In this document: piece by piece, positions 1,275 to 44,960 of the stretch
How the letters are laid out: each line of letters opens with the position of its first letter
Numbering within the stretch: the first letter of the stretch is position 1
From: Entomortierella parvispora E1425
Taxonomy: Eukaryota > Fungi > Mortierellomycota
Length of the DNA: 64,000 bases
NCBI GenBank assembly: GCA_020891255.1
Contig: BQFW01000014.1
Span: 1,612,001-1,676,000 of the forward strand
Direction: 5' to 3'
Notes under the pieces: model-generated
Told to the model about the DNA's origin: nothing
The model's input: only the letters and a program-made list of their open reading frames with translations
The model's database searches: none
Made by a program: the position numbers and the translations under genes

Positions 1275-1299
1275 TGCGACCTGTGTGGATTGAACACAC

Positions 1300-1340
<41 letters not shown>

Positions 1341-1347
1341 AGGTCGC
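1275..1347 (-). tRNA. tRNA-Phe (anticodon GAA), intronless
   Basis: Minus strand GCGACCT-TA-GCTC-AGTTGGGA-GAGC-G-TCAGA-CTGAAGA-TCTGA-AGGTC-GTGTG-TTCAATC-CACAC-AGGTCGC-A: 73-nt cloverleaf with all four stems paired, followed by a T-run (TTCTTTTG). Confidence 0.97.
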
Positions 1348-1654
1348 TATCTTGATTGATTGCTCTAATTCTGAGAAATCTATATTCTAAAGATAGAGAC
1401 TATCACGTGATCATATCACGTGTACATCATTTCGGTTCGCATTTGTCTCATCCTCTGCATGCATGCATGCATGCATCCCTCCCTCCCTATAACTTTTAAC
1501 CCTCTCCCAAGCACCTTTGCTCACAATGTAAGTTAAGCCTGTTCAGTGTTTTCCAATCCTGTGTATATTCTGGTTCATGCACATTGTTTGTACTTTGAGA
1601 ACCTGTGTCAATGATGTGCTTGTATCGATGGAGTGCCTTTTTTTTTTTGGTTCT

Positions 1655-2220
1655 GCAGCAAGGAGGTGGAAGGAGAAGTCCTTTTCTTTCTATTTTCTTT
1701 ATATACTTCCTCTTTCTCAGCGCATCCTGCTTAGCGTTGCGGCAGGGAGGCGGAAAGAGAAGTCTTTTTCTTTTTCGTATTCTCATTTGAGTGCTTCCTC
1801 TTTCTCAGCGCATCCTGCTTGGCGTTGCGGCAGGGAGGCGGAAGGAGAAGTCTCTTTCTTTCTATTTTCTTTATGTACAGTACTTCCTCGTTCTCAGCGC
1901 ATCCTGCTTGGCGTTGCGGCAGGGAGGCGGAAGGAGAAGTCTCTTTCTTTCTATTTTCTTTATGTACAGTACTTCCTCGTTCTCAGCGCATCCTGCTTGG
2001 CGTTGCGGCAGGGAGGCGGAAGGAGAAGTCTCTTTCTTTCTATTTTCTTTATGTACAGTACTTCCTCGTTCTCAGCGCATCCTGCCTAGCGTTGCGGCAG
2101 GGAGACGGAAGGAGAAGTCCTTTTCTTTCTATTCTCTTTTATGTACCTTGTCTTTCTCAGCGCATCTTGTTTAATTTTGCGGCAAGATGGTGGAAGGAGG
2201 AGTCTTGTTTGTCTTTCTCT
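1655..2220. repeat. Tandem array of ~89-bp units (~6 copies)
   Basis: ctcagcgcatc recurs at 1716, 1804, 1893, 1982, 2071 and 2156. The three central copies are identical and the flanking ones diverged. Confidence 0.95.
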
Positions 2221-2237
2221 CCATCCTCCACCTTATC

Positions 2238-4740
2238 ATGGATACCAATACCATAGAATAATTTACAGATACAGCTCCAATGGCCACTTCCGGGAAAACG
2301 AAGCGACTCTTCTCTCTCGGTTGATGAATCAGCAAAGGTGCAAGTGCAATGACTCGTTTGTCGCGTAAATATAGAGGTAACCATACTTGAAGACGTGATG
2401 TTAGGTCTCCAAGGAGGCAGTCGGTACACCCTCGATGTTATCTGTGATTCCTGTCGGTATATCCCTGATTCTATGCCTTCAATTCCAAAGACCGCTGATG
2501 ACAGGTAAGAACGCTTCTTTTTACTATTTCATCTGATCTTTACAGCAGACTACATATTTTTACCCACTCTCGCTAGCTCTGTCTGCACTATCAGTCGCAT
2601 CCGCCAAGCCTGCGCTTTCTTGTCTTGATGCGGCCTCTAACTACAGTTCATTATTTTGTCAGGCGTCGTCTTTGCCCAATCCCCCTTCTTCATCAGAAAA
2701 TGTAGAGTGCCCTCTTTTTTAAGAAGGTCTGATTGTGAACAGGTATGTCAGGGCTATTCTAATGATATCCGCTACTCTTTGAAATGGACCATAGGTCTCA
2801 ACTGCATTGCGTCAACTCATTAAGTTCAATCTTAACAGGACATCTTAGAGGAGCAAATGGTCGCAGTACAGTGGAGGATCAGACAACCTAGGAGTCGACA
2901 TGTCCCTCCCTACTCAAGGTGAGTAGGTGCAGGAGATGTTGGGTGTTGTCAGTAAAGGCCTTGACGCCATGGATACACCGTAGACGATGGTAGCAGATCT
3001 AAGCATAGACAGGCATAGGCGCGATGGAATTATCGCATCCACAATATTAAACACACAACTTGCACACCATAACTACTCCTGGATATCAGAGCATCTACTA
3101 ATTGTCTTCCATAGAGAGTTTGTATGACTTTTGAGTGTTTTTGGTTCAGCCCATTTGACATTTTTTCGCCTCAAACTTCCTCGAGATGATAGAAATAACG
3201 TAACTTTTAGCACAAGGATGCACGTTAAAAGAGAACTAGAAAGGTACTAAACCCACCGTAGTTTGGCTCTGAGCTTCAAGTGCTCAGCTGTATAAGGAAG
3301 AGCAGGACGCGGCGTAGAATTGTCTCTCGCCACGTAGAGTTCTTCTGCTTCTTCGTTGTCGTTGACACTGAGAAAGGGACATTGGTTCCATCTGTGCAAG
3401 GCGAGGTTCAAGTTAAGAGCGTTCGGAGAGATCACCAGAATACAAGGTTTAGGATACATTCATATCGCATACATGGGAGACACTCAAGACGATAACCAGC
3501 TGGTAGAGCAAGATGAAGATTTCTTCGAAGCGTCAGGTCAAAGCTCAAACACCAGCATCGGCGAATTCATGGCACTATTTTCCGAGGAGGATTGAAACGA
3601 GATAATATCTGATCTCCCATCTTATGAGCACTATGGCGAAGCAGCTGGCGAATACCTGGACAAGTGCATGGAAGTTTCCAGCATGAAGGATATGAGGAAG
3701 ATTCTGGAGGGGCGACAGAATGATCCTGAATGCAAGATCATATACTATTGTATGGATCAGTGGTAGGTTATCCTGGGTAGCTCTCAATCATTTTGTTGTC
3801 GATTGGCATGAACACATTATTTATCGTGTTATTTTGTCCATGATCAAAAACAGGGAGGAGCTACTTAGCATTGAGCCATCGCCTTTCCACTTGGCAGCGC
3901 AGTTGGGGGAGACATGGTGGAAGGATAATGCATGGGGGGTGTGCCGTCGTCTTACCACAGGTATTAAGGACGCCTTTATCATTTTGGGGGAGAAAACTGG
4001 TCACGACTCGGCGGAAAGAAGGAATCAGGATATTGGTACCATTGACCGAAAGAAAATTGGAGTCAAGGCAGATTTTCTATGGCGCACAGTTTCCACTCCT
4101 GATATCGACTGGTCAGCTGGAGAGTCAGCAACATTGTGGGACCCGGCATCTATGAAGTACCGGGACGAAGGTGTCTTCAAGCTACCTCGACAGCTTCATG
4201 ACATTTTAGTTGCAAGAACCGGCGAGGCTGGCGGCGTTGATTCCCTTCGCAAGGAATATGTATGCGGACTATTGACTGGAGGTAAGATTTGCTTTCAACC
4301 GCTTTTCAGTATATAGATCTGACCGTGTACTCATGAGCATTGTTAAAAAATGTGCTAAAAGGACCGGTTATACAACGGGTGCAGATCTGCTGGGGCACCA
4401 AAGGAGTAAATATCACGAGGTTTTTCAGATCGCCAGAGCGTCGTCTTTTCCCAAGCGTACAAGAGCTTGGAGTTAGCCTGATGGCTGTCCATGATCTCCT
4501 CATACTCCGAGTAAGAGATAGACGTACAGTGATGAAAGGAAGACGGGACACAGCTGACTGAGATACATTCTGGTATAATCCTTCCAGGCCACAACTCTCC
4601 GTCTATGCAATACGTACCAGGACTGCCGCCGTCAGCTCTCTGTAGCCTCTGCCAAGTCGAGGCGTCAGGAGCTGCTGCTTCCCTCCATTTCGCCCAGGGA
4701 AAAGAGGAGGAAGTTTAGTTTGCTATGTTCTTCTCCTTGA
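2238..4740 (+). pseudogene. Decayed multi-exon gene for a restriction-endonuclease-fold (PD-(D/E)xK-like) accessory protein
   Basis: The 3' exons splice in frame (3852-4280, 4361-4510, ~4590-4740) and give LGETWWKDNAW...LGEKTGHDSAERR...KKIGVKADFLWR...DWSAGESA...KLPRQLHDIL, ending SPREKRRK...*. Upstream exons carry several in-frame stops, e.g. TGA 3593-3595. The 5' boundary is approximate. Confidence 0.7.
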
Positions 4741-5260
4741 ACCCGGATCCAAGACAATCCACGCCACATCTACGTGGCCCAAGTGATGCTGATCGATACT
4801 TGCTATTAAAATGATAGCGGTTCTGTTGTACTATTGTTCTGCAACTCGTTTGACCTACTCGCTTGCTCTGTCCAATCTGGACGCCAAACACTGGTGCTTG
4901 TCATTAACAGACAAGGCAGGAGGAAGAAGGACAGGAAAGAATTATGGTGAATTGCAGACTGGGGGACAAGACAAGATAGCAAGGAAAACATATTCTAGCG
5001 TGAGGTGAGGGCTTAGGTTACAGATGACCCAGAAAGAAAGAGTACAGAAGTGATACCCAAAGGGATAACATATGAATGCTGGTATAGGGCAGGGCGACGA
5101 AGTCTGAACCCGCGGGGGAGAGAGGGGAGAGTAGAAATGATGGCGAGCGACTCAGAAAGTGAAGTACTCTCCACCTTACATCGGCTTTAGTGAATGTAGG
5201 CATGTAGATTTTTTTCCCCCCTGTATTCACAATTTTAATATCAAAAAGATCGTTCAGTTC

Positions 5261-6203
5261 TCACTGCAGACTTTGAAAGATCTTTGCAGCAAGACTGGCG
5301 ATAATGGCAGCCTTGTGGGCATGCTCCAGTCGACCAAATGCCTCCATGACGCTGACGCCCTTGATGTCTCTGATCTCACCCAACTTTTTTCCACCATATC
5401 CTCCCTAAAAAGAAAGAAAAAATGTAGATATTTGTAACGAAATCGGGTTTCACCAGGTTCAGCAAAGATCCAATCGAGAAATAATAGAAAGTGAAAACAG
5501 GGGAAAGTAAAAACAAGGCACATGATCACATACCATGACGGCTCCAGGGATACCTCCACAAATGAATCCCAGAGCAACACCAGACGCCAATCCAATGGGC
5601 GAATAAAACGAGGTCGGATTCTGAACTTCGGGACGCAGCAGTTCTTCAAAAACGCCTCCAAATACAGTTTCTGCCTCTGCATGGTGTGATGCATTGGTAG
5701 ACCAGGCGTTCTTGGATTCCCGGGATCGTGATCTCCGAGCATTGTCGTATTCCCGACGCCTGTCCTTGTTAGACAAAACATAATAGGCATCTAGAAAAAA
5801 AATGCAAGATATTTAGAACTCCCCGTTTCACTGTCATCGTGCAATATGTGGAAGCTGGGTGCAGTCGGGAGCGACAGGAAGTCATGGATTCACACAGGAG
5901 GCATAACATCAGCTCTTACCCGCAACCTGCTGGAATAACACTGTAGCTTCTTCCTTCGACAATGGCCGCTCTCCATCAGGGCCTCCAATGTTGGTTGTCC
6001 TATCAGGGTGTGTCCTGAGCGCTTCACGCTTGTAAGCCTCTCGGATCTGGTCTGCACTCGCAGTCTCGGGGACTCTGAGGAGTTCTAAGAGTGTCGGTAG
6101 ATTATAAAAAAGTGAACCGAGGGTCAGCCGTTGGTTGCCAGTTAAAGTTGCTTCGGAGGAACTGTCAGAGATACATACCGTAGTAGTCAGGAAAACTGCT
6201 CAT
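5261..6203 (-). CDS. Small J-domain (Hsp40-type) protein with C-terminal glycine-rich hydrophobic segment, 4 exons
   Basis: Spliced: [37 protein letters not shown]...LFQQVADAYYVLSNKDRRREYD (HPD motif)...IGLASGVALGFICGGIPGAVMGGYGGKKLG...FQSLQ*. Confidence 0.9.
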
Positions 6204-6587
6204 GTTCGTTGGTGATTCTCAGCAGGAGAGAAGGAAATGGTATAATGACAGCAAAATGTCGTTAAGAAAGAGGAGAGAGGAAAGTTGGAGAATGAAAGGA
6301 AGGAAGGAATGGGGAATGGGGAATGGGGAAATGGGAGAACGGGAGAATGGGAGAATGGAGAAAGGCTAAGGCGAACGTGGCCCATGCCAAGAGGCCCTTT
6401 TTTGCTCCTCCGCTCCTTGCTGAGCCAATCACGCGCGCGCTTTGCAGGATGCTTCGCCCGTTGGCGAGAAAAGTTGGGCATATTCTGGTTTTATTACGCT
6501 TTGTACTTTGTACAAACGACGGCTATCCTGGTCTTGCTGTCTCTGTCCTATTTGCTTGTAGGCCTCCCTGTCCGCTTGAAGGTCTCC

Positions 6588-7704
6588 TCAGATGGCAAAG
6601 TTGTACTGGTATTCAGATTCGGTGTTCTGGGCAACCCACAGAATCGCCGCACTAGAAAATCAAACAAAAAGGTTTCACAACATAGATGTCAGGAACAGAT
6701 GACGTGAGGACCCCCTGTCAGTATCCTTTCTCTTCTCAGTTTCTGGGTCCTGGTGAAGCCTTACCTTGTCATGATCGCTGCATTCTGGACAACGTTGTAG
6801 ATTCCCCATGAGACGAAAGGTTCACCATATCCTGAAATCAGATACTTGATGCACAAAATCGACTATCAATAAAAAGGTCGAGCCAGAGAGATGAAGTGAA
6901 TTAGAATGATATGTCGTCGCCCTATCTTTGACTCCTTTCATGTGTGCTATTGCTGAATCCCTCCATTAGAATATGGTCTCTGACAGTCAACGCACCACTG
7001 ATCCTGCAAGTCCTCCTGCCATGAATGCAAAGCCGACAAAGAGGAATACGCGAGCCTTCCAGGCTACGCTGGTGCCACCTCCACTTGAAAACGAAAACGA
7101 GTCTCCCCGAAGAGCGGCCTTGTCAATACAATTGATCCTATAAAAAAACAATTCAGAGTTGTTTGTTTGAATGAAAATGTGCACACAGGGGCAGGTCAAA
7201 TGATCCCATCCACGATAGCAATCGGAGTCAGCTAAAGCGTGTCGTCCAGTCCATGCCAACCAACTCAATAAAAAGACATACACAATCATTCCCAAAGTAC
7301 TGCAGATGCCTGGCACCCAATCCACAAACTGAACAGAGGTCTTTTTGTATCCATCGTCATAGTTCCAGTTCTTGGAGCGGATGGCAGCATCGATAAAGAA
7401 CCACCAGCCCAGAGCAAACTATCATTTTTTTTTGTCAAAGAAAAAAAAAGTAAATGGCTGTCAGCAGACATGGAGCAACAGTAGGTGGAATGCAAAGCAC
7501 TTTTGAGTGCATTCGCTGACATTTCAATGCTTCCGATGCATGCGCGCTTTCTTTCTAGAAAGAAAAAGGGAGGGTTTGCTTTACCAATGCCCCAGAGATG
7601 TATACGCCTGCATCGCGAGCCCTGGGACCAAGGCGAGGTATCCTTGGGATGGGGAAGAGGCAAATGCGCTTGTGGTGTTCGTTGAGGTTCCACTGTGATG
7701 ACAT
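6588..7704 (-). CDS. VPS68: Vacuolar protein sorting Vps68 (UPF0220/TMEM50 family), 5 exons
   Basis: Spliced: ...GVYISGALFALGWWFFIDAA...FVDWVPGICSTLGMIVINCIDK...AWKARVFLFVGFAFMAGGLAGS...VQNAAIMTSAAILWVAQNTESEYQYNFAI*. Confidence 0.9.
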
Positions 7705-8864
7705 TGCAAGGTGGTCGTTGGGTTGGTTGCTGGTAGAAAGGTGAAGTTGGTGCAGGGCAGAAGGGAAGGAGGACCGTTGACGTGAGGGCAAGAGAAGTCT
7801 CCCGCGTGACTCGGCTGCATCCCCTTAATCGTCAAACCTTCATTTCCTCTCGCCACCAAAACTTCCGCGCGCGCTGCTTTGCCGCTTTGGAGAGACTGGC
7901 TGATGAGCTTGCTTGGGCGGAAACTGAAGAACAGAGCATGCAGTGGCGAGGCTAGCTCCAGTACTTACGTTAGGCAGACGGTCAGCGCTAGCTTTCTTTC
8001 TCTCTCTACATCGTCTTCCATAGTATTATGGATTTAACATCCGGTGGTTGCATGTATCCCATTGTTCTGTCCTTCTCTGGCTTCGACAACTAGACCTAGA
8101 GTTGGTTCGGGCCTCGCTCTTGCCGCAGCCCTGCCACCGATGGTCACAGCTCTAAATCTACGGCAGACTTCCATGCATGGCTTTGATCGTAGCCAACAAC
8201 CCAATTCGTACGAACGCGATACTCACGCAGGGGTCAACAGAAGGATAGTAAACTCGAGCGGTGGCCGTGATTTTCCCTTACAGGATGATGTTTACAATCA
8301 CCTTCATCGACTGACTTGGAGTTGTAGTCTGCTGACCACTCGCGAGACGCCGTTAGTATTTACCTAACAAATCCTAGTGCTTCTTTTTCAGCGTCGCAAA
8401 CTGAAGAAACTGTCGTTCATCCCTCAGGTTAAATTGAATGAAGACTCAAGCTTGTTGACAGAGCCGTCGAGGATAGGCGAGCACAAAAACTGAGCGGTAA
8501 GGTAAATAGGTTCTCAGCGACCGAGTGTATTTGAAACGCAGGCAAGGTCCGCGAATTGCGATTGCAAAAAAAAAAAAAAAAAAAGAGTAAGAAAATCAAG
8601 CTGGTGACTAGAGTTGTCCAAGATTTCGGCACTGGGCTTTCAGCATTCAAAGAGTTTCTCGATGGTCCCTGGTCTGAGCCCTCTGGTGTTCCATGACAAG
8701 TAGATTAGAGCATTGTATTTCTCAGCAAGGGTCAATTTCATAAAGTTGAAGGACGGTCGATCGACTCAACAGGTTCAAAACATATCAGCGTTGGACTAAG
8801 ATAAAGAAGTTTGTATATTTTGCATAGAACTTGGTCCAGGTCATCTTGATATGTTTGTTCATAC

Positions 8865-10725
8865 TTAAGATCCAGCGGCTATTAAGAGATGGTGGGCGTG
8901 TTAGTACCTGGGTCATGATATAAGAGATCTCTACAGTGTATACAGTATCCTCATAAGCCTTACTATAAAAGTACACAGACTCCCAGAGGGGCTGGTAGTC
9001 GCGAACAATGCCCGCAACAAGGGAAATGAGGGGCTTCTTGCTGGCCGACTCGCAAAACTTGTGCAAGCGCTCCCTATTCAACGAAAACGTAGATGTTTGT
9101 TTGTAAGCCAATCGCCAAATATGAACAATGTCATTCTTCTGTCATGCTCGCTAATCTTTGTCCAAACAGACATAATCTCCTTTCCAAATGGATTCTCAAA
9201 AAAAAAAAAAAAAAAAAGGAGAGACTTACTTTGTGAACCTGTCATAGAAGGGGCTACGAAGAACATAGTACAAGAGGAGCCACAATCGCCTCTTCATCTC
9301 ATCCTTCTCCAGGGCCGTTCCAGAGCTGCCACGACCAGCCGCTGAAGGACCAGACCGGCTGGCCAAAAAGGAGTTGATACTTGTCCTGGAGGCGAGTTCC
9401 AGGGCCAATGATAGGAACCAAGGGTACCAAGATTTTTGACCATACTTGCGCATCGCGAGCACATAGATCAAAGGTCGCAGCACAAAGAGGTATTCGCCGA
9501 AAGCTCCAAGGCCTCTCATCATACCAACCAAGTCACGAGGCTTTCGAACCACATCAGGCGTCAACACCTTGCTCAACAAGAACTCGGTCACGTCCGAGCT
9601 CTTGGAGGACAGTTTGCCGCCGGAGGTGCTCTTTTGCACAGCACTCAATTGCAGTCGAGGGGTTCCTGTCCTGGATCCAGTCCAATGGCTTTCCTTGACA
9701 GACTGCTCGGCTTCTGCCAGATCAGCCAGAGTCGAGGGGTCGACATCGCGTTCAGTGTGGACAGGATACATGATCATCCTCTGGTTTGTCAAATGGAGCA
9801 AACTCAATCGTCCAGCCACCCTATCACGAGGCAATAAAACAACATTTGTCCTTGGTAAGTACACAAAAAAAAAACACGCAGGCAACGGCATTTTTCGTCC
9901 AAAGCGATAATAAAAGCCGATTGCCCAACATTTTCCAATCGCGTGAAGGCAGACGAGCAACTGGTTCACAAAACGTACTTGAATGCTTCCAAGGCTGTGA
10001 TTACGCGCCACTTGTATTGCTGGCCCCACTTCTTTTGCACGCCCATTTCGATCAAAACTTCCGTGTACTGGATCACGGTGAGGACCATAGCAATTCTCTT
10101 GTAAGTCAATGAGTTGCTCTGCCAATCCCGCGTGTATCGGTTCAAGGGCGAAGGTGTGGGGCGATGGGTGGCTGGCAAGCTTGCCACATGTCTGGTGAGG
10201 ATGGTATCATGGTAGATGCCAAGCAGGTTCAGGGTCGAGAACACTAGAAAGTGGTTATCAAAATGTTAGTATCTTTCAATGCAGGGAGGGGAAGGGAGGA
10301 CTGGGGTTCAATTGGCACAACGATCCTTTTTGTATGAGTGAGAAAAAGATAGCGGGTGCTTCTTCAGGGGTGGGACAGTGAGAAGGCAAGCAGAAACGGG
10401 ATCGATTCATATTAGAAAAGAACAGTATATTTTTTCCTTACAAGCTTCCGAAGCGAGATCGGCATCATCGAATCGGCCTATAGTTGGAGAGAACGGGAAC
10501 AGGTGAGCAAAAGGGTTCTCCACGAGTGACAAGGCGGAAAAGGAAGAGGAAGGCAATCGATGCAAGGTAGGAAACTACTAAGACGCCTCTCAAGCCCCTG
10601 GGTGAACACTGATTAAGCACTCTACCTGGCAAGATATAGGTCAATGACCTCAGTGTGCTCTCGATACTGGAGACCTGAGAGGCATTCTTGAAGATGAATG
10701 ACTCGTATTTTTTCAAGAAGTCCAT
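8865..10725 (-). CDS. PEX16: Peroxisomal membrane protein Pex16, multi-exon
   Basis: MDFLKKYESFIFKNASQVSSIESTLRSLTYILPGRFDDADLASEA...GEYLFVLRPLIYVLAMRKYGQKSWYPW...RRLWLLLYYVLRSPFYDRFTK...GIVRDYQPLWESVYFYTAGS*. Confidence 0.92.
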
Positions 10726-12145
10726 TGCACGTTTCTTCGTTCACTCTCCTCCTTTTGTGTGCACGAGAAAAAGGTTTCTGCGGGAGAGCGAATGAGAATG
10801 AGGACGACGATGAGAGGAGAGTTGGATTGGGTGAAAAGACGATGAGAAGAAAGAAAAAGAGATGAGCTGGTGTCAGTCTAAAACGCTTCAAAGGGACATC
10901 AGAACGGAACGAGGTGGAGTCTGCGAGCCGAACATTTGAGTCTCACGAGTGGATGAACACGCAATTTACATTGGGAGCTGATCAGTCAGAGGAGGCAATC
11001 AGACGCCAGTGGGTTTCTTGCAGGTTAGCGATGACGGGAAGAAGGAATGAGGATGAGGTGGAGTGGGGGAAGGCAGTGGCGACGGAGAAAAAGTGGGGAG
11101 CTGAGCAAGTCAAAGAAGCCAAGGCTCAAAGCACCGAACACCCGCACACGACTGGCTGAACAGGTGAACTGGCATTTTGGCTCCCCCGGATCGATCGCGA
11201 GCCAGCATGTCTTTCTGCCGAGTGACACCCTCTGTAAAGAGCACTGTGTCGTTGACACGTGCCACTCTCGCCTAATGCAAACAGCCCTGTTGCAGCTCTT
11301 GCGATCCATATGTCTTCCTGGGTGAAAGGCTTCCCCGCGTTTGCCACTAATCTCTTTCTTTTCAAGAGCGAAAGCTGGCAGGAAGTGGGGACAGCATCGA
11401 ATCGAGGCTGGAGTGGGGTGGCCACATATATGCTGTTTATCCTTGTGTTCTCAAACAAAAGGAATGCCCCGTCCCTTGCAGCCCCCCACTCCATCCCCCT
11501 TTTTTTGATGTCGTGCCCCCACTGTCTGCAACCCCCATCAAAATGAAAATGGACGGTCGATGGCTGGTTGTTGGCTGGTCCTCCAAGGTCTGCGCCGCAT
11601 TTTGATCTTGCCCTTTGCTCTTCAACTCGGAGTTGTTCAACAATTCAACAAGTCGAGACTCGCGCGGGTGCTGAAACAGCTCGTCGAGCCACGGGAGATC
11701 GCGCCCATATTTGGCAGCCAATGCTCACAGGTGTCACGATGGCGACTTGGATGCTGATGGGAACCTGGCCCAGTTGGGGCTCTCATTGGACGACAGTCAG
11801 CAGCGAGGCTGTCTGCTGCTTGTATGCCAGAAGAGTCAAGCACCAATGCAGACGGTGGAACAACACAACACAAGGCAAGGTAGGCGGACAGACCTGTTCT
11901 TTTCTTGGTTCGTCCGTTCCTCTCTTGCTCTTCTTTCCTTCCTTCCTTTCATCCTCGTCCCCCCTTTCCCTTTGACCGCCCCTTCTTTTCCGTTCCTCTT
12001 TTTGTTTTTATTTTGAAAACACCACCCCCTCGCACAAAGCTGCATTCCACCTCTCTTCTCTTCTCTTCTCCTCATCCTCGCCCTCTCTTGCTGTGCATTC
12101 CACCCCGCCTCATTTCCACAACGCACAACAGCCTAACAAAAAACA

Positions 12146-14101
12146 ATGTCCATCAACAGAGGCAATGTCGTCCTGGTCATCGGCATGTTAGCCGCAGGAA
12201 CTGCCAACACGATCATTACAAAGTGTACGTTTACTTTTCCTTGTCGCACTTCCCTTGTCTGCGCCGGCTGTGCTTGTTTTGTTTTCGTTCAGAACTTAGT
12301 CTGTCGATCTCGATACGAGTCCTTGTTAGTGCAGACAACGACAAATCCAATCCGGGTCTAGCCTGCGTTTCGGATTTTTGGATCGTTGAGTAACACGGAC
12401 TGACCATTCTTGTTTTTTTATTATCATCTATTATCTCATATTCCAGACCAGGACAAGGCCTGCGTCAAGAACTGCGATGGCCCTCTCAAGGAGCGAGAAC
12501 ATTTCGAGCAGCCCATCTGGCAGACCCTGAACATGTTTGTCGGTGAGAGTTTGTGTCTCGTTGTCGCCTCGATCTGTGCCTTCCTCGCAGACAAATATGG
12601 ACGTGCCAAGTGGGCGGATCTTGTCTTGGATGATCAAGAGGATGACGCACTCGCTGTGGTCGAATCAGATGGTCTCATTGTGCCTGAAGCCATCCATGGA
12701 CACGGACACGGTCATGGCGCCTCTTCGAAGAAGAAGCTCCAAGGTCCTCTCGTTTTGTTGCTCTGGTTGCCCACTCTCTGTGATATGACTGCCAGCACGG
12801 TAAGGCCAATCCTACGTCGAAGTTGCGTCTCTGTGCAACACGTTTGCGTCATGGGTTGATAGATCTGGAACAGGATCTTGGATGGGTCATAGGAGGCGCG
12901 ATATGAACATCAAAAGAATTATGGCTTGCATTCTCAGGATGCAGGACACAGGGGTGAGATTGTCAATAGGCAGGAACAGGATCAAAGGCTGCACAGCACC
13001 GATTTTTATTTTTTATTTCCTTCAGTCGCGCACGTCGAGTTACAGTGAGGATACGGCCTGAAAGACAAAAGGGTGCCACTGCTGGTCATTAGAGTCCTCA
13101 AAGCCAGCCCCCGCTTTCCTTGATCTTTCCATCCTGCCCCCTGCCACGTTTAGTGGATCATATGAAAACAAAAGAAAAAAAACCAAGGATCGGGAACTTG
13201 GACTTTCAGGAAGGAAGTAGTTTCACCCTCTCTCAAACAGCAGCCTAATCAATCCGTCCATGTTCTTGATTGTTTCCCTATCCAGCTTATGAACGTGGGC
13301 TTGATCTATTGCGCTGCTTCGGTCTACCAGATGCTTCGAGGTGCATTGGTCATTCTCACTGGACTTTTGTCAGTCTTTTTCTTGGGTCGACGTCTCCTGG
13401 CTTTCGAGTGGTTCGCATTGTTCACTATCTCTGCTGGTATTGCCACAGTCGGCCTGTCCTCTGTTATCAATTCAAGGGTTACCCCAGTCGCTGATGGAGG
13501 TGTCGACCCCGATTCGGATGAGGCTATTCAGGCGGCCAAGGCCATCCTCGGAGTCTTTCTCGTCCTCTTTGCTCAGATCTTCACCGCGACACAGTTCGTT
13601 ATTGAAGAAAAGTTCTTGGCTGGATACCAAATTGCCCCTCTTCGTGCTGTTGGATATGAAGGTATCTTTGGTACCATCACCGTCTTGGTCGCCATGCCTA
13701 TCCTCCACTTCACCGTGGGTGCCTCGAACCCTGGATCGTACTTCAATCTCACCACTGGTTGGGAGCAGATCAAGACCTTCCCCCAGATTTGGATCCCTGC
13801 GATCATCATGCTTTTCAGTATCTCGTCTTTCAACTTCTTTGGCATCTCGGTGACAAAGACTGTCAGCGCCACGTCTCGATCCACCATCGACTCTTGCCGT
13901 ACCCTCTTCATCTGGGCCATCTCCCTTTACCTCGGATGGGAGACCTTCAGCGTCCTCCAGGTCGTTGGCTTTGTTATGCTCGTCTATGGAACCTTCGTGT
14001 TCAATGGCGTTATCGCACCCCATGTGTGCGCCCCACCCAAGCCTCTCAACGCTGGCGAAGCCCGCCCTCTGTTGAACAACAACGGCAATGCCTTAGATTA
14101 G
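12146..14101 (+). CDS. SLC35F6: SLC35F6-like drug/metabolite (nucleotide-sugar-type) transporter, 3 exons
   Basis: MLAAGTANTIITK / FEQPIWQTLNMFVGESLCL...LPTLCDMTAST / LMNVGLIYCAASVYQMLRGALVILTGLLS...AQIFTATQFVIEEKFL...SATSRSTIDSCRTLFIW. Confidence 0.88.
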
Positions 14102-14387
14102 AGGCGTTCTACCCTCAAGATGATACCACGCCCCTTGTCTTTCTATCTTTGAACAACACAGTCGCAGCTTACACAAATAAACTGAATACCCAAACCTTTT
14201 GCTCACTAGGAAAATTCACAGATACCATTTCGAACAAAACAAAAGAAATGAAGTACGGCCCAACTTTTCAATCCAAATTTTCTTTCATCCAGATCAGATC
14301 AACGTCCAGACTGCCACCAATCATTACTGTGTTCTTTGCACTTGTCTGTAATGAGTGTTGCAAGCCTGGAAGCCCAATACACGCTTT

Positions 14388-16216
14388 TTATTCACTGTCT
14401 TCCAGATTTTCAAACTGGGGACGCTTTGGAGGCTTAAGAGTGGTATCCACGACTTGCCTGACTTTCTTCTTCTTTGGCGTGAGAATGACTGACTCCTGAA
14501 GTGACTTGGGGGTGGAGAAGATCGGAAATGTCTCATACTCAAGATCAGAAGCAAAAGCAGCCTGACGGTCATTAGATCTGTGTAGATCCATCGCCTCCTT
14601 TGCAATCATAGCCAACTTTTCCAAACGAGCCTAGATATATATAAAGGTGTGGGTTATGGATCAGAGCACACTACAAATCATGCAAAGACATGGGAGTATC
14701 GTACCATCAAATTCATCAAACACGACAATGTTGAGCCATCGAGAAACGATTTCATCGTAGCGCTCGTCGTAGGAAGGATAAGAATATGGTTTGTAACCTT
14801 TCCTGCAACGTATACGTCGTCGAACCGCTTGACAGTCGTAATGATGGCCATATAGCCTACTCAATCACTGATTAATAGCCGAAGACAGAAAAAAATACAG
14901 AGAACTACACAAAATCGTTCTTTACTCACCAGAGGTATCTGCCGCGTAAATTTGTGCATCCTCCACTCCGGCCTTCTCAAGATTTCTCTGGATACAACGC
15001 GCAAGTCGCAGGTTTTTCCTTGACTGTATCGCTCGAGGGGTCGCCTTTTGGTCTGGTGCTTTTAACTCCATGTTCGCTAACTCAATAGCTCCGTATCGAA
15101 ACTTGATGTCCACCTTCCTCACAAAATCACTGGTCTCTAGCCCATACTCGTCAGATAGTTCTTCTAGAATGGCTTTGCTCGATTGCAGTCCTGTTTCACC
15201 GCTAGAGACAATGGCACCAAATGAGGGAGTTAGGATATGGTGAAAACCTGATCACTATCACCTTAATGAGTGAATCCCTACGTGTGCATGGTTATCCCTT
15301 CTGGAAGCAATGGCTTCAAAATGTTCACCCAAGAGGTCAGACAGTCAGTCTCCGACACAAGTGAAGGATCACCAAATGGTCGCTGTAGCACTAGATCGCA
15401 ACTACACGTGGATTTAGACACGGTGACGAAGATGAGTATTCCATACACACCTTACAAACTCATTTGGAAGCTTACTCAACTTACAGTTGCTCCATAATCC
15501 CTAGAAATTTTTCGCGAGGAGTTCTTGCTTCGATTTCTAATCGCCGTCTTGCTCGGATCAACTCAGCCTTCTCGAGACTTGCATCATCACGTAGTTGAGC
15601 GACAGAGCCATGGGCTTCCATACTTTCACGGTACTTGTCAATCCAATGCTTGGCAACAGGATGGTCATCAAAGTCGCTCTCCATGCACTGATCATACCAA
15701 TCCGCGGCGTCTTTTTCGTCGAAGTAGTCAAACGTCGACGAGCAGATGAGATTGACAACGCAGGACATTGCAACCCTGCGTTACCATATATTAGCAAAGA
15801 GTGAGGAGAGCATCACCGAGTTAGTGTATCCCTCGTTGGATGTTAAAATATGACCAATATGACACATATCACGTTGAAATTGTTCATAATTCTTACATGG
15901 CATCCTTTAGCAATACCGAATCCTTCTTCGAGAGGCGTTGATATTCAAGTAGGCGATCTCGAGCAAGATTGAATAGTCCCCGATGATTTTGAGAGAGAGT
16001 CTGAGCGGGCTCTGGGATTACAACATTTTCTTTTCCAAAGTGCTACCGGTGAGAATAAGGTTGTCAAGCCATGGTCAACTCGTGGACTACTGTACAGTAC
16101 TTGGACCCTACAGAGAGATCATTACTTACGAGCTCAGTGTACGCGATATAAAGTTTTCTCCAACAGTCCTCAGACAAGGGTTTCGAAATGGGTCTCCTTT
16201 TCCTGTTGTTATTGTT

Positions 16217-16266
<50 letters not shown>

Positions 16267-16682
16267 CATGTATCCTTCCCGTCGACTTTTTCTTGTCATC
16301 CAAAGTTGTGGGCGTGCTGGTCGATGCGTCCTTTGCTCCTTTTGCAACTATACGGAGAGGGAAAACCGTGTTATTAAACGTGTCTTGTAAGCAACAATTA
16401 TTCGTATTGACAAATCTCACTCTCATGTTGGTCAACAAAGTGGCGGAGGCTTGTTTGAACCATGGTGGAGGTGGCTTTGTCCACGGCCTCTGATATATTC
16501 GGCTCGGGTGCAGCCTCTCATTCATGAAACCATTGACGATGCTGCTCTGCCTTGAGTTGAGGCTTTTTGCGGCCTTTATTGCCACAATAGTCTGTGACAT
16601 AGCGGTGGTAACCGAAAAATGCTTTGCTCCAGGTCATTTCGCTGCCTTGAGCTTGAGAAAGGTAGCCTTTGAAAGAGAGCAT
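14388..16682 (-). pseudogene. Near-intact 8-exon gene (567 codons) for a PD-(D/E)xK nuclease-fold protein, with one in-frame TGA at 16518-16520
   Basis: Exons 16682-16421, 16347-16130, 16042-15897, 15775-15485, 15401-15282, 15201-14930, 14856-14705 and 14630-14388. All introns are GT-AG and phase-compatible. Motifs: SETDC...GETGLQSSK...RKVDIKFR...ELANMELK...QSRKNLRLARCI. An in-frame Met at 16463 lies downstream of the stop. Confidence 0.85.
16205..16264 (-). repeat. (AAC)n microsatellite encoding ~20 Asn in exon 2 of the nuclease-fold gene
   Basis: gttgttattgttattgttgttgtt... on the plus strand. Confidence 0.95.
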
Positions 16683-16935
16683 GTCGGTAAAGAGGTCTCA
16701 TTTGACGACCAGCCCCTTTTTCTTTGACGCGACAAACGCGAAATGAAGGTGGCTTAGAAATAAACGCTTAATGAGTGTGTTTCAACCATTCACTCTCTCT
16801 TCTCCATTCCTCCCAACCTGTAGTTAGTTTACCTAATTCCACCCTCGAAATCTACCAAGGTCAGTGTTGCCATCGTCAGTGTCTTTTCGTGTGTGTTTTT
16901 TTTGGTGATTATTTTCCATTCATCCATTATTTCGC

Positions 16936-17826
16936 AAACTGGTTGCATCGGAGGGTGAGTTGCTCATTAGTTGATGCACTCGCGGATAGAGGGGTCTTTG
17001 ATGTGTCCAGTCTGAGGAGGTCCACACAGCTGGCTTCTGGACTAAATCTATTTGATGCTCTGCGGTGCCACTGTGAACCACGCTCTTTTTGTTCATTTCT
17101 TAAACTGGTTGTATCGTGGGGTGAGTCGCCACAGCTCTTTGAAGCAGTGCACTCGCGGATAGAGGGGTCTTTGATGTGTCCAGTCTGAGGAGGTTCACAC
17201 AGCTGGCTTCTGGACTAAATCTATCTGATGCTCTACGGTACCACCGTGAACCGTCCTCTTATTTTCCCCCGTTTTTTTTGTAATATTTCGTAAACTGGTT
17301 GTATCGTGGGGTGAGTCACCACAGCTCTTTGAAGCAGTGCACTCGCGGGTAGAGGGGTCTTTGATGTGTCCAGTCTGAGGAGGTTCACACAGCTGGCTTC
17401 TGGACTAAATCTATCTGATGCTCGACGGTACCACCGTGAACCATCCTCTTATTTTCCCCCGTTTTTTTTGTAATATTTCGTAAACTGGTTGTATCGTGGG
17501 GTGAGTCGCCACAGCTCTTTGAAGTAGTGCACTCGCGGGTAGAGGGGTCTTTGATGTGTCCAGTCTGAGGAGGTTCACACAGCTGGCTTCTGGACTAAAT
17601 CTATCTGATGCTCTACGGTACCACCGTGAACCGTCCTCTTATTTTCCCCCTTTTTTTTGTAATATTTTCGTAAACTGGTTGTATCGTGGGGTGAGTCGCC
17701 ACAGCTCTTTGAAGCAGTGCACTCGCGGGTAGAGGGGTCTTTGATGTGTCCAGTCTGAGGAGGTTCACACAGCTGGCTTCTGGGCTAAATCTATCTGATG
17801 CTCTACGGTACCACCGTGGACCGTCC
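16936..17826. repeat. Tandem array of ~190-bp units (5 copies, first and last shorter or diverged)
   Basis: aaactggttg starts at 16936, 17102, 17292, 17482 and 17672. Copies 2-4 are nearly identical. Confidence 0.97.
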
Positions 17827-43900: not shown

Positions 43901-44960
43901 ATCGACTACACATCGACCTACAATGCACGATCGTGAGTCGTCCTTATCCTCGTCCTCGTCTTCATCATCCTTGCCCACACCTGGTGGCATGAACTCTGGC
44001 TTTAATAATCACCAAACCAACGGTGGCTTTAGCAACGCGGGACCCATGTCTCCTCCAGGAGCTAACGGTGGCTATAACAACACGGCGCCCATGTCTCCTC
44101 CAGTATCCAACGGTGGCTACAACACAGCACCCATATCTCCTCCAGTATCCAACGGTGGCTACAACACAGCACCCATGTCTCCTCCAGTATCCAACGGTGG
44201 CTACAACACAGCACCCATGTCTCCTCCAGCAGCCAGTGGAGGCTATAACAATACAGCACCCATGTCTCCTCCAGTAGCCTTTCCATCCTCGTCGTCTCAT
44301 CAGTCCCTTCATTCAGCCATGGGAGGACCTGCTCCATTAAGGCCAGTCAACCAGAATCACAACAGCACCAACTTGCTGGTCGGTCGGCCGGTTTCGCCTA
44401 ACCCTCACAACAGCCCCTATACTATGTCCCGTGCATTGCGTCTCCACGAGAATCAGGAGCGAGACAAAGCGTGGGCGATCTTCAAAATGTTTAACGACCA
44501 AGGAAATGTCGAGGGCATGTACTGGACAGCCTACTACCTTTTCCATGGTGAAGGTGGACAGGCTCAGGATCGAAAGCGGGCGTTTGAGATCTTTTTGACG
44601 GTGACGCGAATGGAGTTGTTGCAGCCGCCGACGACGGCGTTTGATTCCATGACGCAGCATCAACAGATGCAGCAGTTGCATTTCCAGCGACTTGCCGCGA
44701 ACGCCAATTTCTACACGGCCGTCTGTTATTTGGAGGGACAGGGTGTGGAAAGGAACCATTTGATGGGATTTGGACACATGGAAATGGCGGCCGATTCAGG
44801 GAACGCGTTTGCTCAGTACCTGGTGGGAGACGCGTACCATAAAGGCAGTGCAGTCGTCCAGGCGAATATTCAGAGGCGGAATCATTACTGGCAATTGGCT
44901 GCGAGACAGAGGGAGCAAAGAGCCATTGACCAATGTCGAAAGTTTGGTATACCTATTTGA
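40950..44960 (+). CDS. MLKL-like protein: N-terminal helical bundle + brace + pseudokinase + Q/P-rich linker + Sel1-like repeats, 5 exons
   Basis: Helical N-terminus (AQAINEAAKTAQANKVSCQAMNHRIQIANEII...LLERMRDFVLEISK...FDALLREFDNCVLELNLGI). Kinase fold with VAEK, SEVAIL, IIHKTLRAKNILL (HRD to HKT), KITNFR (DFG to NFR), WLAPE, DIYSFGMLLFEI. C-terminal GNVEGMYWTAYYLFHGEG / ANFYTAVCYLEGQGV / GNAFAQYLVGDAYHKG. Confidence 0.85.
44019..44280 (+). repeat. Coding tandem repeat, six 14-16-aa units (NGGYNTAPMSPPVS consensus)
   Basis: 42-bp core unit aacggtggctacaacacagcacccatgtctcctccagtatcc repeated in frame. Confidence 0.95.

Follow-up and report, generated by a model that had tools for sequence, protein, structure and literature searches.

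In a 64,000-nucleotide window of the genome of the fungus Entomortierella parvispora E1425 (contig BQFW01000014.1 of assembly GCA_020891255.1, positions 1,612,001 to 1,676,000 of the forward strand), two long-unit tandem arrays lie on the 5′ side of two genes that appear to belong to a single superfamily of predicted nuclease-fold proteins, found only in Mortierellaceae. Comparable arrays recur upstream of other members of this superfamily, more often than in background DNA and never in the corresponding downstream zones. These repeats may well be young minisatellites, private to each locus, which occur preferentially but not obligatorily 5′ of the nuclease-fold genes. An initial annotation, made from the sequence alone, had seen in the two loci a recurrent cassette of array and nuclease gene; both arrays were recovered with Tandem Repeats Finder, each upstream of a gene of the corresponding strand, and the recurrence of the pairing has also stood. 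Most of what that annotation proposed about the function of the arrays and the limits of the genes has not. All positions given below for arrays A and B, genes A and B and their surroundings are those of the window, that is, the whole stretch analysed.

Arrays in the 5′ flanks of the superfamily

The comparison was based on 28 independent loci of the superfamily, 17 of them in the E. parvispora genome and the other 11 on contigs from further assemblies of Mortierellaceae. Gene spans were taken from tblastn matches, upstream zones of 2.5 kb were compared with downstream zones, and arrays were counted when they had a period of at least 75 bp and a Tandem Repeats Finder score of at least 300. Upstream zones contained arrays at 8 of the 28 loci (8 in 65.4 kb) and downstream zones at none (0 in 68.6 kb), whereas the background, ~351 kb from 30 kinase loci together with everything else in the window and in the family loci, yielded 4. 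The upstream excess is thus about 9-fold (P about 1e-3), and 8.7-fold when the two loci of the discovery are removed (conditional binomial P = 0.0012). The split between upstream and downstream zones, 8:0, has a P of 0.004, and a P of 0.016 (6:0) without the discovery pair. The initial annotation had made its case depend on homologues carrying upstream arrays more often than background genes, and on this point it was not refuted.

Besides arrays A and B of the window, the upstream set comprises those of loci L002 (166-bp unit), L009 (130), L010 (138), L015 (173), L049 (176) and L054 (231). The periods, from 89 to 231 bp, are different at each locus, and four of the eight arrays correspond to each of the two subfamilies, here called A and B. 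Locus L049 comes from Linnemannia hyalina and L054 from another assembly, whose contig ends inside the array. In L002 and L049 the arrays consist of just 1.9 copies at 99% identity. On the other hand, 20 of the 28 loci (~70%) lack an upstream array, including L055 and L057, which carry annotated and apparently full-length genes. Some arrays may have been lost to assembly: at four family genes (L017, L052, L053 and L054) the contig of the other assembly stops 0.3-2 kb upstream, that of L053 in a (CT)n tract and that of L054 within its 231-bp array. This is consistent with assemblies breaking at repeats in front of the genes, and the true count may be higher. Five family B loci on metagenome contigs show no arrays and were left uncounted, since short-read contigs would break at such repeats.

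Other repeats were noticed beyond the counted zones, downstream of family genes. Loci L005 (1506-1689) and L007 (2794-3008) have in common a repeat of 76/77 bp with ~81% identity, and L007 contains an 82-bp array (483-884) near the end of contig 1.

The two arrays of the window

Array A (1654..2205, with no strand assigned) has 6.3 copies of an 89-bp unit with 87-90% matches, its inner copies being identical and its outer copies 85-91% identical. Array B (16928..17826, likewise without strand) has 4.6 to 5 copies of a 190-bp unit: Tandem Repeats Finder delimits it at 16975-17826 (period 190, 4.6 copies, 91-97% matches), and an additional degenerate copy on the side of the gene extends it to 16928. 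Its four distal copies are 96-100% identical and the gene-proximal one ~84%, with a deletion. Homogenised inner and distal copies, and a diverged one at the end facing the gene, were confirmed for array B. Each unit occurs at a single place in the 38.9-Mb genome (a 20-contig assembly), and array B ends ~330 bp upstream of the ATG of gene B at 16600. Across array A the three forward frames are all open (open reading frames, ORFs, at 1577-2089, 1791-2174 and 1819-2256), which is likely due to the pyrimidine-rich, A-poor composition of its unit.

As the initial annotation had stated, arrays A and B are unrelated, with no shared sequence or k-mer beyond chance. The same applies across loci, where the units have no common sequence, except for a marginal 12-mer in L010 and L015, no k-mer in common beyond chance and no shared motif. 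Nor did the arrays turn out to be structured, as had been proposed. Compared with dinucleotide shuffles, a single unit of array A folds no better than the shuffled sequences (z -0.7 to -0.8), and the same is true of array B on both strands (z +0.1).

Several known kinds of element were considered for the arrays and their surroundings, and rejected. Structured RNAs were discarded for arrays and spacers, which fold no better than the shuffles; Rfam recognises in the window only a tRNA-Phe (1275-1347, minus strand), ~300 bp from array A, and no link to tRNAs was found. A guide or CRISPR-like array does not agree with copies arranged head-to-tail without spacers. A transposon was rejected given that there are no terminal inverted repeats, the flanks are single-copy, the paralogues are alike in their coding sequence only, and introns are retained.

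Gene B and the predicted fold of family B

Gene B (14388..16600, minus strand) is an apparently intact member of family B, with 564 codons plus stop, as judged from a check of frame and GT-AG borders and from homologue matches. Its seven exons (16600-16130, 16042-15897, 15775-15485, 15401-15282, 15201-14930, 14856-14705 and 14630-14388) show no in-frame stop from ATG 16600 across the GT-AG introns. The spliced model was checked exon by exon. The initial annotation had started this gene at ATG 16682 and considered it broken. However, this ATG is in another frame, within an upstream ORF of 54 codons ending in TGA (16518..16682, minus strand) that shows no match to the profile of the N-terminal module described below, and the supposed stop after ITMHT falls in an intron. 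Exon 1 encodes a poly-Asn tract, corresponding to (TGT)21 at 16204..16266 on the minus strand. The predicted active-site stretch, RKVD ... IELANMELK ... IQSRKN (15012..15110, minus strand), holds the residues that are near-invariant in 62 homologues.

The core exon (14928-15203) has 6-7 paralogues in the genome, and a profile built from them matched 368 cluster representatives in the protein library, all those looked up being hypothetical proteins of Mortierellaceae. No match to Pfam was obtained with the exons of gene B, and a search of the PDB sequences with the family B profile found nothing. The Pfam family HSDR_N was weakly matched by two family members (E 0.008).

The structure of family B was modelled with AlphaFold2 from the 62-sequence alignment, with a predicted local distance difference test (pLDDT) of 94 and a predicted template modelling score (pTM) of 0.92. 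A search of 48,161 chains with VIA-align showed that residues 112-283 match many nucleases of the restriction endonuclease (REase) fold with Z of 6-9.2, among them BpuSI (Z 9.2), DrdV (Z 9.1, root-mean-square deviation 2.8 over 138 residues), 9y1l (Z 8.0) and TT1808 (Z 7.6), as well as HsdR, NgoMIV, Can2, McrC and NucC. The best matches, with Z of 10.6 and 10.1, were two human mitoribosomal protein chains, which have an REase-like fold. Foldseek searches of PDB and BFVD returned weak matches, with PD-(D/E)xK nucleases dominant or recurrent among them, and the ESM Atlas gave a template modelling (TM) score of 0.57 over 240 residues to a cluster of the ascomycete family PDDEXK_12 (PF20516). Residues D167, E181, K183 and Q195 (numbering of P0057) are at least 90% conserved in the 62 sequences, are kept by gene B, and fall in the model on strands 2 and 3 or the helix that comes next; E176, K198 and N199 are also near-invariant. 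From the model and these residues, family B is confidently predicted to have a PD-(D/E)xK core (alpha-beta-beta-beta-alpha-beta) with a conserved D...ExK...Q motif. The REase fold that had been suggested for both genes is thus upheld for family B.

Gene A, a remnant of family A

Gene A (3473..4719, plus strand) belongs to family A according to homologue alignment and frame check. It was initially placed at 2238-4740, immediately 3′ of array A, but ATG 2238 meets a stop after 7 codons and detectable homology, in alignments with longer homologues, begins at 3515. Its coding pieces are 3473-3592, 3596-3763, 3852-4283, 4361-4510 and 4588-4716 plus stop, the first two being separated by an in-frame TGA (3593-3595) where every homologue covering the site has a Trp (LFSE.DWKEI). 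Because the conserved N-terminal exons are missing, a conserved Trp is replaced by TGA and ATG 2238 runs into a stop, gene A is a decayed, 5′-truncated remnant, 1.3 kb from array A. The single-copy spacer that separates them (2206..3472, plus strand) resembles neither the N-terminal module nor any family protein in sequence, and shows no unusual fold.

The main exon (3852-4283) has ~9 paralogues in the genome, and the relatives of gene A are all annotated hypothetical proteins from Mortierellaceae; its exons showed no match to Pfam. The closest copy in Mortierella alpina is 79% identical to the window over 3571-4740 only, with unrelated flanks. Alignments of family A identify D74, D86-W87, E91, W96 and K102 of the main exon (4071..4157, plus strand) as invariant.

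A superfamily of Mortierellaceae

A motif-for-motif alignment of proteins A and B had been described by eye. This order (SE, GE, GxKxD) was reproduced by hhalign, but with a probability of only 1.5-3%, which is not significant. The link between both families comes instead from an N-terminal module of ~100 amino acids (pattern ISF..FVR.F ... FW.E) that heads the full-length members of each. The modules of P0015 (family A) and P0026 (family B) match with E = 1e-9, and tblastn searches with modules of one family reach loci of the other (1e-8 from an A member to a B locus; 7e-11 and 4e-9 from a B member to A loci). Because of this common module, families A and B belong to one superfamily, linked only at the level of families; the module profile was detected in neither of the genes of the window. 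The module matches 32 places in the E. parvispora genome. Full-length members would be made up of the ~100-residue module, a disordered linker, a helical domain with the predicted PD-(D/E)xK core and a basic tail. The superfamily is restricted to Mortierellaceae and has no Pfam match, and our literature search found nothing on it, on the pairing of arrays and genes, or on a link to upstream minisatellites.

Broken copies are common: L001 and L002 have a TAG in the N-terminal module, L006 an in-frame TGA, and the near-identical pair L003 and L005 have each their own, different frame break. Family copies are dispersed and non-syntenic between species, and many of them contain stops or frameshifts, a profile that fits a nuclease family of fast turnover, possibly selfish or related to genetic conflicts. 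The L003/L005 pair lies in a segmental duplication of 7.6 kb with 99.8% identity (L003 2436-10000, L005 2432-10000), with one copy on contig 16 (125 kb) and the other on contig 5; it carries a family A gene together with its 29/39-bp upstream repeats.

The neighbours in the window are housekeeping genes (Pex16 and a nucleotide-sugar transporter), and a further tandem repeat occurs at 44017-44276 (six copies of 42 bp, score 340). Fanzor/TnpB proteins (PF07282) have 85 matches in the genome, and such a match is found at most 10 kb away from ~4 of ~40 family places, versus ~1.8 expected, a weak association. ORFs similar to Fanzor/TnpB (PF07282) also adjoin family A loci of Linnemannia hyalina, at L049 1-234 and L050 3893-4524.

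Discussion

The most plausible explanation for these observations, to which we give about an even chance, is that the arrays are young minisatellites of independent origin, preferentially located 5′ of members of the nuclease-fold superfamily without being an obligatory part of them. The process would start with the tandem duplication of the local 5′-flanking, promoter-region DNA, independently at each locus. The resulting arrays would arise, or persist, preferentially 5′ of family members, and would act at most in cis on the promoter, through changes in copy number, in spacing or in chromatin. Behind the enrichment would lie a mutational or selective bias linked to the family, possibly a hot spot of breakage or recombination, the action of the nuclease itself, or selection on promoter copy number.

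Several points weigh against this interpretation. The sample is small and the background covers only ~351 kb, and a deliberately conservative background of non-coding DNA alone reduces the excess to ~4-fold (P = 0.04). A family B locus of Linnemannia hyalina, L055, has an array on the opposite side (3.5 copies of 257 bp, 10435-11317), 2.7 kb downstream of the gene, around which no gene was called and no family homology detected. The placement of the arrays in promoter regions is something that we infer. Moreover, the nuclease fold is less clear in family A, which keeps the Asp and Glu but has no canonical Lys two residues past the conserved Glu, and whose structural model is poor (pLDDT 50); for this family the fold initially assigned to both genes is therefore not confirmed.

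Some of these points would also fit a simple coincidence or regional bias, in which the arrays are nothing but ordinary minisatellites, sitting in long intergenic DNA under little constraint, without any special link to the family. The modest excess over non-coding DNA, the array downstream of L055, the many loci without arrays and the lack of relationship among the arrays are all consistent with this explanation. However, it does not account easily for the exclusive occurrence of counted arrays on the upstream side, with or without the discovery pair, or for a pairing seen again in both subfamilies and beyond the genus, and we consider it rather unlikely, although it is the strongest of the alternatives.

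A more specific possibility is that the arrays are scars, left either by the nuclease itself or by a hot spot of breakage or recombination at the 5′ ends of family genes. For instance, staggered nicks that were filled in and rejoined would produce tandem duplications, to be expanded by repeated cycles. Several arrays are indeed very young and simple duplications, as in L002 and L049, no two loci have the same period, the bias is confined to the 5′ side, and the active site of family B appears intact. On the other hand, no common motif is available as a possible recognition site, arrays are also found beside dead copies (gene A, and L002 with its TAG), and the reading is purely inferential, so that we judge it improbable, including the nick-and-fill example.

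We attach similarly little probability to the broader idea of a new eukaryotic selfish or defence nuclease whose activity or regulation is tied to its own 5′ flank, in a module without conserved array sequence. Such a tie would operate either through self-made staggered breaks repaired into tandem duplications or through repeats that silence a toxic nuclease in cis or switch its dosage, and even taken together these two routes have a slim chance of being correct.

Less tenable still is the proposal that the arrays work as an RNA, be it antitoxin or guide, as a set of common binding sites or as the mobilisation end of a selfish cassette, since the recurrence of a nuclease-fold gene with a 5′ array, which speaks for it, has to be set against the absence of any conserved sequence, motif, fold or Rfam match in the arrays, the lack of spacers and inverted repeats, the ~70% of loci without an array, the single-copy flanks with housekeeping neighbours, and a PD-(D/E)xK fold that differs from the ToxN-type RNase fold. 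An RNA partner of the nuclease is therefore unlikely, because the arrays have no sequence, motif or RNA fold in common. The arrays do vary independently of the gene, which is half of one of the grounds that the initial annotation had named for refuting its proposal, the other half concerning transcription.

The comparison with known systems leads in the same direction. Type III toxin-antitoxin systems such as ToxIN also have a tandem array 5′ of a nuclease-like gene, but their repeats are short (~36 nt), conserved, folded and always present, and the endoRNase that processes them has a different fold, whereas the units described here have 89-231 bp, are unrelated between loci, unstructured and usually absent, and belong to a eukaryotic host. 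The analogy with bacterial antitoxin or guide RNA arrays has thus been removed as unsupported. In the case of yeast, promoter repeats are mostly of short units, while those of the superfamily are approximately of nucleosome size and their enrichment is tied to one gene superfamily. In any case, both share the presence of unstable repeats in the 5′ flank, in yeast as variable repeats in the promoters of fast-evolving genes, whose number of copies might serve for tuning. Promoter repeats of this kind are the topic of a review (PMC3899988).

With respect to the proteins, the structures with a name that are nearest to the family B model are those of two uncharacterised families of Ascomycota, PDDEXK_12, already mentioned, and DUF7924 (PF25545), the latter with a TM of 0.55. 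They show no sequence match to family B at any threshold tried: PF20516 was not matched when eight family proteins were scanned with an E limit of 0.1, and the 25 families listed for the family B members (62 sequences, E up to 10) do not include it. They also come from another phylum, family B adds to the core an N-terminal module and a helical domain of its own, and no upstream arrays were found for them in our literature search. The same core, with Asp on strand 2 and Glu-x-Lys on strand 3, is present in the nuclease domains of type IIG, IIL and I restriction enzymes (BpuSI, DrdV and the N-terminal domain of HsdR) and in DUF820/Uma2-type proteins (Z 7.6-9.2). Unlike those restriction enzymes, family B genes are eukaryotic, intron-bearing and stand-alone, without methylase or helicase partners, and identity is ~10%. 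The superfamily also resembles the Crinkler (CR) effectors with REase domains and the Spok-type killers, as lineage-expanded eukaryotic genes of REase fold with a suspected role in conflict. However, a Pfam scan of six full-length B and two A proteins revealed neither the Crinkler header (PF20147) nor a kinase domain, and the link to Crinkler-type effectors put forward initially has been dropped for lack of this header.

Altogether, a large superfamily of predicted nuclease-fold proteins of Mortierellaceae, covered by no Pfam model, has been defined, and the confident model of family B together with the apparently intact gene B now offers a testable candidate. If the link between arrays and genes were true genome-wide, it would indicate either that a mutational process acts locally in connection with a nuclease family or that repeats control potentially toxic genes.

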